Shown: piece after piece, positions 9,428 through 12,339 of the stretch
Numbering within the stretch: position 1 is the stretch's first letter
Layout of the letters: each line of letters begins with the position of its first letter
NCBI GenBank assembly: GCA_965240325.2
Contig: OZ251254.1
Location: forward strand, 248,001-312,000
Source: Rebecca billardiae RCC1528
Taxonomy: Eukaryota > Protista > Haptophyta
Reading direction: 5' to 3'
Length of the DNA stretch: 64,000 bases
Program-made: the position numbers and the translations under genes
The notes under the pieces: model-generated
Database searches by the model: none
The model's input: only the letters and a program-made list of their open reading frames with translations
What the model was told of the DNA's origin: nothing

Positions 9428-11355
9428 CCGCCGCCGGTGCCGCCGCTCTCCGCGAGCGCCTCGGCCGCGTCCGCCGCCTCCGCCTCGCGCAGCCTCCGCG
9501 CGGCCGTGCTGAGCAGCCACTCGCGCAGCCGCGCCTTCACCGTCACGTTGAGCGCGTGGAAGCCCACCCCCGCCTGCACCGCGCGGCAGATTTGCCGTCG
9601 GTCCTTGTCCACGTGCGCCTGCGAGCGCTGCACGTCCACCTCGGCGAGCGCGGCGGAGATGGAGGGGAAGTCGGTGAGCAGCGCCGCCTCGAAGTCGGGC
9701 TCCTCCGCCGCGGGCATGTGCACGAGCAGCTGCGCGTGTGTCGCCACGGTCGCGTGCAGCTCCCACAGGCACCTGCGCGACAGCACACCGCGCGACAGCG
9801 CGCGACAGCGCGCGACAGCGCGCGACGGCACGCGCGCGGCGGGCGGCGCGCGCGGCGGGCGGCGCGCGGGAGCGTGAGCAGCTGGCGGACGGGGCGATTG
9901 GTGTGTGCGCGTGTGCATCCGAGCCGAGAGGCGCTCGGCCGGCCCGGTCCGTTGGGCGTCGGCGGTGGCGCAGCCCGACGCGCGCACCACGCGCGCGTGA
10001 GCGCCACGGGCGCGCGCCACGGCGACAGCACGAGCAGCGTCGTGCCGATGCGCTCCACGTTGTGCAGGAACGTGGTGGACCACCACTCGAACGGGCGCTT
10101 GAACGTGCCGTGCTGCGAGTTGACCACCACGTCCACCCACAGGAACGGCCGCTCGCCCAGCTCGCCGCGCGCCAGCGACGCCTCCACCGCGGACACCATG
10201 TCCGCAAACGTATACTGCCACTGAGGGCGCGGCGCGCGCGCGGCGCGAGCGGGGCGCGGCGCGGCGGGCGGGGCGCGCGGCGCGGCGGGCGGTGCACGGC
10301 GACGGGCGGGGCGGGCGGTGCAAGCGCGCGAGGCCGCGGGTGAGGGGAGTGCATGCGCGCAGCGCACCGCGCCGCGGCGGCAGCTCCTGCCGCAGCCGCT
10401 GACCCCGCCACCGCACGCCGCGGCCGCGCGCCGCGCCACCTCCCAACCCAAAGGCGCGCGCCGCCGCCGCGCGCCGCAGCCGCGCGCACGCGGCCGCGCG
10501 CACCGCGTGAGACACGAAGACGGTCGCGTCGCCCACGTCCGCGGCGGCTCCGACGGGCAGCCCGCCCAGCCCGCGCTGCAGCGCGCTCGCGTACGAGCAG
10601 TTGTGCGCCAGCGTGCCCGGCATCACCACCTCGAGGCTGAGGTCCTCTGTACTGAGAGGCTGCCCCGCCGGCCGGCGCGAGGGCGGTTGCTCCCAGCGCC
10701 GGTGCACGCGCGGCGGGCCCTCGCGCGGCTGCAGCGCGAGCGCGTGGTCGCGCAGCGCGCGGAGCAGGCCGATGCTCACGCCGCACGTCGGCATCGCCAG
10801 CTCCTCCTCCGACCCCTTCGCGCCGCCCGGACCGCCCGGACCGGACGGCGAGCTCGGTTCTCTCTCCTCCAGGCCGGCCCCGGAGACGCGCTGCGCGGGG
10901 CCGCGCTCGTCGCGGTCGTCGACGGCCAGCTCGCCGCCCGGGCCGGGCTCGGGCGCGGCCGGCTCGGGGGGCGTGGGCGAGCGGTTGGCCGGCGCCCGCT
11001 CGAGCGCGACGGGCTCGGGGGATGCGGGCAGCGCGGGCTCGGGCTCGGCTGCAGGCGGCGGCGGCGGCGGCGGCGGCGCTGCTGCAGCCTCAGGCTGTGC
11101 CGGCGTGGGCGGCGCAGCCTCGAGAGCTGTGGGCATCGGCGGTGCCGGCTCCGAGAGCACCGGCTCGGGCCGTGCCGGCTCGGGCGGCTCCGGCTCGCGA
11201 GCTGCCGGCCGTGGCGGCTCGCGCTCCGCCGGCGCCGGCTTGGGCGGCGCTTGCGCGGGCGGCGCGGCTTTTGGCGCCGGGTCATCGCCCACGCCCGAGA
11301 CGGCGTGGAAGATCTGGGGCTCCTCCTCCTTCGACTTGGAGCCGCAGCCGCCCAT
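8191..11355 (-). CDS. N-acylated TIR-like domain + TPR (kinesin-light-chain-type) protein; exons 11355-10504, 10220-9988, 9772-8191
   Basis: Starts MGGCGS, then a Pro-rich linker. Splicing GT-AG introns 10503-10221 and 9987-9773 gives VFVSHAW...FLWVDVVVNSQH...LLVLSPWRAPVALTRAWCLWEL. TPR repeats follow (NLAAVLTRRGKYAEAEPLHRETL, LGPAHPSTL). Confidence 0.8.
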
Positions 11356-12339
11356 CCCGCCCGCGGACGCTGCCAAGGAACACCCCGCCTCGGCGCCACC
11401 CGCGGACGACCGCCGCCAGGCGCGCGCAGCGGTACCTGCACCACACCGCTACCCGCACCGGTAGCCGGGCGGCTCATCATTCGCGCTCCGCCTTATGGCG
11501 GTCCGGTGTTTACGTTGGGCGGCTGCCTAGCTTGCCTGGGGCCGCCAGACGTCACGGGGGGCCGGGCGGCGAGACAGCGCCCGCCCCCACGCGGACGCTG
11601 ACTCAAGCCGCACCCTGCCCCGGCGCGGCGATCCAACGCCGAGGGAGGGCGGGCGGGAGGCGGAGGAGCGCAGCTGGTTGTCCGTGCGGCTGCTCGGCGC
11701 CAAGCGTGGCCCGTCGGCTGGGTTTGGTAGTCGGGCGGCGGTCCGGTCGGCGGTCGGGCAGGGCGAGGTGCGCCGTGCGGTCGGGCGGGAAAGCGGACGG
11801 CTGCTGGGCGAAACTCGCTCCTGTTCGCCAAAGCCGGTCACTGCCCGTCAACTCCCGGCGCGCGCTCACTTTTCTGCGGTCCGCGCCAAAAGCGAGCTGC
11901 CACACGCTCGGAACGCTGTCCGGGGGCGCGCTGCGAGCTCCGAGCTCCGAGCCCGTCCGGGCGGGGGTGCGGTCGGAGGGGCGCTGGAGGAGGGTATCGG
12001 GCGGCGGCGAAGCGGCGCCGGCAGTCATAACGCGATAACCGCCGCAGACTGCCAAACCCGCCACTCCCGTCGCGTCGGCCATCGCCCCATAACCGCGCGC
12101 GTCGCGCTCCGCCTTATGGCGGTCCGGTGTTTACGTTGGGCGGCTGCCTAGCTTGCCTGGGGCCGCCAGACGTCACGGGGGGCCGGGCGGCGAGACAGCG
12201 CCCGCCCCCAGGGGCGCAGCGCCAGGCGCCACGCCGGCATGGGCGGCGTCGGCCGGCGCGGTCGAGGCCAGGCCCGGCCCCGACCCCCAGAGACGCTGCG
12301 CCCGGCCACGCCCCGACGCACGCCGTCAGCGCCAAGCGC

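Follow-up and report, generated by a model that had tools for sequence, protein, structure and literature searches.

Two sister families of retroelements bounded by split direct repeats are scattered through the genome of Rebecca billardiae RCC1528 (72 Mb in 41 contigs, ~72% G+C), and about half of the 3' ends examined lie just upstream of a gene that is read in the same direction. The stretch analyzed here, called the window below, comprises 64,000 nucleotides (contig 38, 248001-312000) and contains two copies of the first family, copy 1 and copy 2, each placed ahead of a gene labeled TIR-like: one runs on into TPR repeats (the TIR-like/TPR gene) and the other begins with several hydrophobic, presumably transmembrane (TM) segments (the TM gene). 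A reading of the window made from its letters only had noted that the same element sits co-oriented just upstream of both TIR-like genes, and the position, the orientation, and the distance are all confirmed. What this arrangement reflects is probably a general pattern, in which the two families insert at T-rich sites in AT-enriched patches near gene starts and the TIR-like neighbors of the window copies are two draws from it.

The layout of the element can be read from a comparison of the window with itself, in which 11481-12827 matches 62654-64000 at 99.85% over 1347 bp, reaching the end of the window. Within copy 1, the 5'-terminal repeat A1 recurs as an identical 438-bp copy (A2) near the other end (Table 1), and 12089-12210 (B1) resembles 11468-11589 (B2) over 122 bp at about 91-100% identity. 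Because the reverse transcriptase (RT) open reading frame (ORF) of the full-length copy runs toward B2, the element is assigned to the minus strand, on which it reads A1, body, B1, A2, a 62-bp spacer, and B2; B1 directly abuts A2, and the junction in copy 1 is ...GGTTAT/GGGGCG (here and below, a slash marks a junction). An alignment of the junctions of nine copies gives ...GCGCGCGGTTAT as the canonical 3' end. The final 13 nt of this end are absent from copy 1, whose last element base is 11481, and the ATG of the TIR-like/TPR gene at 11355 is 125 bp from this actual last base and 112 bp from the canonical end position; copy 2 has the canonical end, at 62641, 64 bp ahead of the ATG of the TM gene at 62576. 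Both copies and both downstream genes lie on the minus strand and are thus co-oriented, and each ATG is the first start codon following an in-frame stop. Both copies are 99.5-100% identical to a full-length copy of 6756 bp on contig 24 (L031). Copy 1 (4144 bp) corresponds to this full-length element minus ~108 bp and minus a 2.37-kb RT/RNase H segment, and copy 2 (1861 bp), which extends 501 bp beyond the window, to A1 fused to the final 1.4 kb of the full-length element; RT is absent from both as a result of these deletions, and the ORFs of the copy 1 body have no Pfam match. Their identity to the full-length copy, together with their internal deletions, marks copies 1 and 2 as young, non-autonomous derivatives.

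Copies elsewhere in the genome were located by a search with the terminal block, and 1.5 kb past each 3' end was read in the sense of the element. Family 1, to which the window copies belong, has at least 15 copies, all ~100% identical, nine of them with complete 3' ends and six with ends shortened by 69-173 nt. The sister family (family 2), 73-87% identical to family 1 in the terminal block, has at least 30 copies with an A1-A2 spacing of 3.8-4.2 kb; at least 24 of these have near-identical complete ends and several more are diverged or shortened. The last four bases are other than TTAT in ~30% of family 2 copies, and these variant ends, taken with the six shortened ends of family 1, indicate that end formation is not always precise.

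The 3' ends of both families tend to face gene starts at short range. In family 1, co-oriented ORFs beginning with ATG start 112, 64, 70, 120, 58, 243, and 94 bp from the 3' end position and, for copies with shortened ends, 81, 69, and 150 bp from it; in family 2, such ORFs start 32-249 bp from the 3' end in ten copies. When the count is restricted to a range of 32-250 bp and to ORFs that pass a filter for coding-like base composition, calibrated on neighbor genes identified by Pfam, 19 of 39 3' ends adjoin a co-oriented gene start, compared with a rate of 14.3% for control positions taken from the window (p = 3e-7); under a more stringent criterion of 350 amino acids, the values are 16 of 37 and 11.7% (p = 1e-6). 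The statistical excess just upstream of genes that characterizes promoter-targeting elements is therefore present, as measured against an ORF-based control from one window. Among the adjoining genes, Pfam identifies a Sel1-repeat protein (2.9e-123), a glutaminyl-tRNA synthetase, an HXXEE membrane protein, three RCC1 genes, two of which are RCC1/F-box paralogues, a TPR protein, a GNAT acetyltransferase, and a PQQ-like propeller; the synthetase is read from its true start codon, as its N-terminal domain begins at residue 19. In 5 of 14 family 1 copies, the 5' end has a divergent gene start 47-227 bp away, and several copies occupy head-to-head ATG-to-ATG intervals of only 135-340 bp.

The insertion sites also share a sequence signature. 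The 5' flank of family 1 ends in G-W-T-T-Y, with A or T at position -4 in 13/13 cases, T at -3 in 9/13, T at -2 in 12/13, and C or T at -1 in 11/13; on the other side, the first base after the canonical ...GGTTAT is A in 14 of 20 cases, which creates TTATA across the junction. The AT content is 41-43% within 25 bp on either side and falls to 28-30% further out, and the paired flanks reveal no duplicated flank bases at the insertions. Since the target pentamer is similar to GTTAT, the B end of the element itself, which abuts A at the internal B1/A2 junction, we infer that recombination of a circular or joined B/A junction with a look-alike site would produce such targets. The earlier suggestion of targeted or selected insertion thus holds in general terms, the insertions being non-random, enriched at gene starts, and marked by a target signature; its link to TIR genes does not hold.

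Some family 2 sites have features of their own. At one of them (L049, contig 1, about 2272352), 95 bp ahead of a gene, the end of the element directly abuts 24 bp left over from the B end (...GTGGGTCTACCGAGTGAGTTAT) of the miniature family represented in the window; this suggests either that different split-repeat families struck one promoter repeatedly or that the B end of another element served as the target. On contig 31, the two paralogous RCC1/F-box genes, ~88% identical in their first 60 residues, each have a family 2 copy upstream (L038 and L055, at about 587.5 kb and 595.1 kb, with L037 nearby), 51 and 91 bp from the ATG; the copies are 99-100% identical and, as their junctions are 40 bp apart, they look like independent insertions into paralogous promoters. 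Three further copies (L042, L046, and L050) adjoin one and the same repeat (...AAGAATAAGAGACGCACACAGCTCAGG), probably an end of some other mobile element; it occurs again, in reverse, right after the miniature element of the window, at about 40660-40700.

The TIR-like superfamily offers a large set of loci against which the association seen in the window can be measured. The TIR-like profile finds ~79 loci, which are of the 'FVSHAW...RAWCLWE' type and frequently carry a TPR_12/TPR_10 fusion; exon 3 of the TM gene has 94 matches at ~90 loci of a multi-TM type with 'WLDKxCxxQ...LLVLxGPxYxxRLWC'; and a six-frame genome search with TIR_2 yields 18 loci, none of them in the window or near any element copy. 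Apart from the two window genes, none of the ~79 and ~90 superfamily loci or the 18 TIR_2 loci has a mapped copy directly upstream, and every other gene-adjacent copy examined, in either family, lies next to an unrelated gene. The sequence-only reading had raised the idea of insertions specific to TIR genes; with the copies mapped genome-wide, enrichment at these genes is absent, which is the first of the two outcomes that it had named as refuting its idea.

Several points weigh against a general preference for gene starts as the explanation of the window, and those that concern TIR-like genes speak for an element targeted to, or retained at, such genes as a supplier of a promoter or 5' untranslated region, a silencer, or an excisable switch. 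Both window copies adjoin genes of the same TIR-like superfamily, and at least two TIR-like neighbors among ~21 gene-adjacent copies correspond to a nominal Poisson p of 0.014-0.04 (~170-185 TIR-like genes in an assumed total of 12,000-20,000), a post hoc value because the window was flagged for this very coincidence. The contig 24 copy lies 2.8 kb from a gene of the TM subfamily, convergent with it and not upstream of it, and a shortened family 2 copy lies 3.2 kb from another TM-type gene. Set against the unrelated neighbors of all remaining gene-adjacent copies, the ~170 other superfamily loci and 18 TIR_2 loci that lack a copy directly upstream, the loss of RT from both window copies, and a recombinase that is undetectable in the family, a TIR-specific role appears very improbable; the two TIR-like neighbors are probably due to chance, aided by the size of the superfamily. 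Descent of both window loci from a single duplicated unit of element plus TIR gene would account for the equal relative order and orientation of repeat and gene at the two places. This candidate was rejected and we give it practically no credence: similarity stops at the end of the element, the leaders and genes have no similarity at the DNA level and the junction flanks differ, one gene has a TPR and the other a multi-TM architecture, and the internal deletions of copies 1 and 2 are not the same.

The remaining points against a preference for gene starts concern the strength of the placement signal and lead to an explanation by selection. ORFs and base composition served to call gene starts, within a flank of 1.5 kb per copy, the control is a single 64-kb window and a permissive one, and random insertion confined to short intergenic DNA might alone yield perhaps 15-25% adjacency. 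A downstream gene-start call follows 12% of the GWTTY/R sites of the window, and 27% (7/26) of those in an AT-rich context are near a gene start, so that site availability explains part of the bias, but not all of it. An orientation bias is unproven, as the excess at the 3' end (9/15) over the 5' end (5/14) in family 1 is suggestive and not significant (Fisher p = 0.27). Site availability plus selection, instead of active targeting, may account for part of the signal. In its full form, this argument would have integration random bar the short GWTTY site, the promoter-proximal, co-oriented copies being the survivors after purging from exons, introns, and antisense promoter positions. Every examined copy is indeed intergenic, some (L037 and L040) lie instead at the 3' ends of convergent genes, and more than a quarter of AT-rich target sites are near gene starts to begin with. 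Selection as the only cause is nevertheless unlikely in our judgment: the copies are 99.5-100% identical, which suggests a recent burst, their adjacency of 49% is still above 27% (binomial p about 0.003), and divergent ATG-to-ATG intervals of only 135-340 bp, very small targets, have been hit several times.

In the account that we prefer and hold to be probable, a general preference for T-rich sites near gene starts, the elements insert without target-site duplication at short sites of the form 5'-G-W-T-T-Y, usually followed by A, inside AT-enriched patches. In a genome of ~72% G+C, it would be chiefly the short promoters and leaders ahead of start codons that provide such patches, and for this reason about half of the copies end 32-250 bp upstream of a co-oriented gene, whatever its product. 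The choice of integration site, through sequence and open promoter DNA, plus the purging of in-gene insertions would yield the observed pattern, and expression of the downstream gene may be maintained by the A2-spacer-B2 end, which points outward. A2, identical to the 5'-terminal repeat, is directed toward the host gene, so that an outward promoter in it is plausible. Obligatory silencing of the neighbor gene is unlikely, given that one such neighbor is the glutaminyl-tRNA synthetase gene, and the idea of an excision switch finds no support, as the window copies lack any enzyme-coding ORF and a recombinase was not detected in the family. A bolder version, which we consider doubtful, is that an Ngaro-like lineage of at least three families with the shared grammar ...GTTAT/GG... 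recombines site-specifically and in sense orientation into GWTTY core-promoter sites, that its A2-spacer-B2 block (TTATA at 14/20 canonical junctions) takes over as promoter or leader for the host gene, and that family 1 relies on a recombinase supplied in trans.

As judged from its repeats and ORFs, the family is one of recently active retroelements with split direct repeats (A1-ORFs-B1-A2-spacer-B2) of the Ngaro/PAT kind. The published definition of Ngaro elements is A1-[ORFs]-B1A2B2 (PMC8547959), and the split direct repeats found here follow the same order, which is that of Ngaro, PAT, and kangaroo-like elements of the DIRS order. The coding region of L031 is also comparable, with a long gag-like ORF containing a Cys/His knuckle-like string, then a 573-amino-acid ORF with RVT_1 (2.8e-8, above cut-off) and an RNase H-like tail. 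As in Ngaro/PAT-like elements, target-site duplication is absent, the paired 5' and 3' flanks of 6 copies sharing no repeated bases. By comparison with these elements, the families described here have an additional 62-bp spacer that parts A2 from B2, and the place where a tyrosine recombinase (YR; R..H-x-x-R..Y) is expected holds a minisatellite of 0.8-1.2 kb followed, in L031, by ~200 poorly protein-like codons ahead of B1. The minisatellite, between RNase H and B1 (window 12826-13603; L031 about 3700-4900), is made of 11- and 31-bp units and is open in all three frames. No ORF of the full-length copy has a Phage_integrase match (Pfam, E 10), an Atlas search for a recombinase returned nothing informative for the family, and a 'GRW......Y'-like string in the full-length copy was noticed by eye only. 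The earlier description as a YR retroelement therefore stands for a retroelement with split repeats and RVT_1 in its full-length copy, and its YR part derives from the architecture, as no recombinase was detected.

A genome-wide search with PF00589 gives five equal-scoring weak Phage_integrase matches of 25 bits, every one away from the family loci (contig 38:21097-21360, contig 33:128848, contig 12:523132, contig 18:1305435, and contig 23:1222761); their probable source is a separate element family that bears a recombinase and could act in trans. In terms of integration, the Ngaro elements of Cafeteria have family-specific site preferences, with endogenous virophages favored (PMC8547959), and the families described here are alike in having an integration-site preference; by comparison, the preferred target is here just upstream of host start codons. 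In a limited search of the literature, targeting of promoter-proximal sites was not found to have been reported for DIRS, Ngaro, or PAT elements.

The label TIR-like given to the two window genes stands at the level of the fold, where it has moderate structural support from a model of a homologue; curated TIR profiles do not match. Pfam TIR (PF01582/PF13676) matches neither the whole ORFs of the two genes, nor their exons searched singly at E 10, nor any of ten natural homologues, and the TM gene has no Pfam match at all. The TIR-like/TPR gene has GT/AG exon borders, matches TPR_12 (1.9e-21) and TPR_10 (7e-19), and has its motifs and exons in the same order as in the natural homologue P0004, which has all of them in one piece; the family profile A1 matches its exon 2 at 1.3e-34 and its exon 3 at 9.1e-23. 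A large protist family, with 1411 representatives at E <= 0.001, includes exon 2; its members usually run on into TPR_12/TPR_10 and have no Pfam domain over the exon 2 region. An Atlas look-alike search with this exon finds only unnamed protist clusters. Exon 1 of the TM gene encodes several hydrophobic segments and ends ...DAFVSHS, and its short exons hold matching motifs. The match of this gene to the TIR-like family profile is marginal (E 0.46), and it is tied to the family by these shared motifs and by one paralogue only (contig 15, 1696204-1696596), which is matched by both queries.

The fold was predicted on residues 125-335 of P0004 with a 30-sequence alignment, and the AlphaFold model has a predicted local distance difference test (pLDDT) score of 86.3. 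Its best Foldseek rows are plant TIRs, at E 0.02-0.1. Upon structural re-alignment, the top matches are the TIRs of SARM1, RPP1, RUN1, ThsB, and MyD88 together with nucleoside deoxyribosyltransferases, with Z of 5.3-7.2 and a root-mean-square deviation of 3.1-5.3 Å (most about 4-5) over up to 144 residues (114-130 for the top three), a list that is consistent, at moderate scores that are within the range of common-fold matches. The best structural matches of the homologue are thus nearly all TIR or deoxyribosyltransferase, in likeness to the TIR domains of SARM1, plant NLRs, and bacterial ThsB/SPARTA. The alignment of homologues contains an invariant motif, R-x-W-C-x-x-E with an invariant Glu, which we take to be akin to the plant TIR 'WC..EL' motif holding the catalytic Glu. 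Unlike these TIR domains, the window proteins have no Pfam TIR/TIR_2 match, and an extra helical module follows the core. The label 'TIR-like fold', short of membership in the TIR superfamily, is reasonable on the basis of the model.

That no other gene in the window has such an element upstream, as the sequence-only reading had stated, is true for this family, and not for split-repeat elements in general: an unrelated miniature element of the same layout (window 38629-40591, plus strand; A of 277 bp, B of 298 bp) also sits upstream of a co-oriented ORF. Its junction grammar is that of families 1 and 2: its B ends ...GAGTTAT and its A starts GG.... It is placed in a (TA)n tract, with TTAT/AAAG as the 3' junction. 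The co-oriented ORF of 397 amino acids starts at 40762, 170 bp downstream, and has coding-like composition; neither it nor three other neighbor ORFs has a Pfam match. The window further contains a direct repeat of ~890 bp (52362-53258 and 56368-57241, 4 kb apart at 97% identity), which has tandem repeats inside it and may represent the terminal repeats of another element, and an inverted repeat of ~815 bp (1764-2578 and 3120-3932, 98.5-99% identity) with ~540 bp between its arms.

Table 1. Features of the two element copies and of their downstream genes, in window coordinates.
Feature	Position	Strand	Details and basis
TIR-like/TPR gene	8194..11355	-	Exon 1 11355..10504 (ends ...FVSHA); exon 2 10220..9987; exon 3 onward from 9771 (CLWEL...), TPR_12/TPR_10 included
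Stretch of 125 bp from the ATG of the TIR-like/TPR gene to the last element base of copy 1; host 5' leader or promoter remnant	11356..11480	-	Copy 1 leaves the other copies 13 nt before the canonical end
B2 of copy 1, terminal repeat at the 3' end, without the last 13 nt	11481..11589	-	Self-comparison; junction alignment
Spacer between A2 and B2, 62 bp, not repeated after A1	11590..11651	-	Self-comparison; comparison with the full-length copy
A2, 438-bp copy of the 5'-terminal repeat A1	11652..12089	-	100% identical to 15174-15611
B1, internal copy of B	12089..12210	-	Repeats; junction reading
Body of copy 1: gag-like region and minisatellite (12826-13603); 2.37-kb RT/RNase H segment deleted	12211..15173	-	Comparison with the 6756-bp copy
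A1, 5'-terminal repeat of copy 1; 5' flank ends ...GAGATTT	15174..15611	-	Self-comparison
TM/TIR-like gene, 5' part	60601..62576	-	Exon 1 62576..61302; exon 2 61087..60995; exon 3 60723..60601; translation and splice sites
Stretch of 64 bp from the ATG of the TM gene to the canonical 3' end of copy 2	62577..62640	-	Junction alignment
Copy 2: B2 62641-62762, spacer 62763-62824, A2 62825-63262, B1 63262-63383, then body	62641..64000	-	Repeats; A1 beyond the window end

Retrotransposons that target promoters or the 5' ends of genes are known from other systems, such as Tf1 of fission yeast and, at genes transcribed by RNA polymerase III, Ty1/Ty3 and the TRE and DGLT-A elements of Dictyostelium. 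The families described here resemble them in that insertions gather within a short distance upstream of genes, the genome being compact, in line with a 'safe haven' logic. The elements of the Tf1, Ty, and TRE type use DDE integrases or target-primed reverse transcription, protein tethering, and target-site duplications; by comparison, no duplication is seen here, and the target is a short asymmetric motif similar to GTTAT, the B end of the element, as site-specific recombination would lead one to expect.

If true, a promoter 'safe haven' strategy would be one that has not been described for tyrosine-recombinase retroelements. The failure of the proposed immune-gene switch removes a tempting, unsupported story and leaves a testable integration-site preference in the least understood order of retrotransposons: the motif is defined, the junctions are precise, the copies are very young, and independent insertions next to identifiable genes number in the dozens. 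A bias that arises at integration would reveal how a retroelement of the recombinase type locates the 5' ends of genes in a compact, GC-rich genome; and should the A2 end drive the neighboring genes, many promoters would have been rewired at once, including those of a tRNA synthetase gene and of members of a large TIR-like family.

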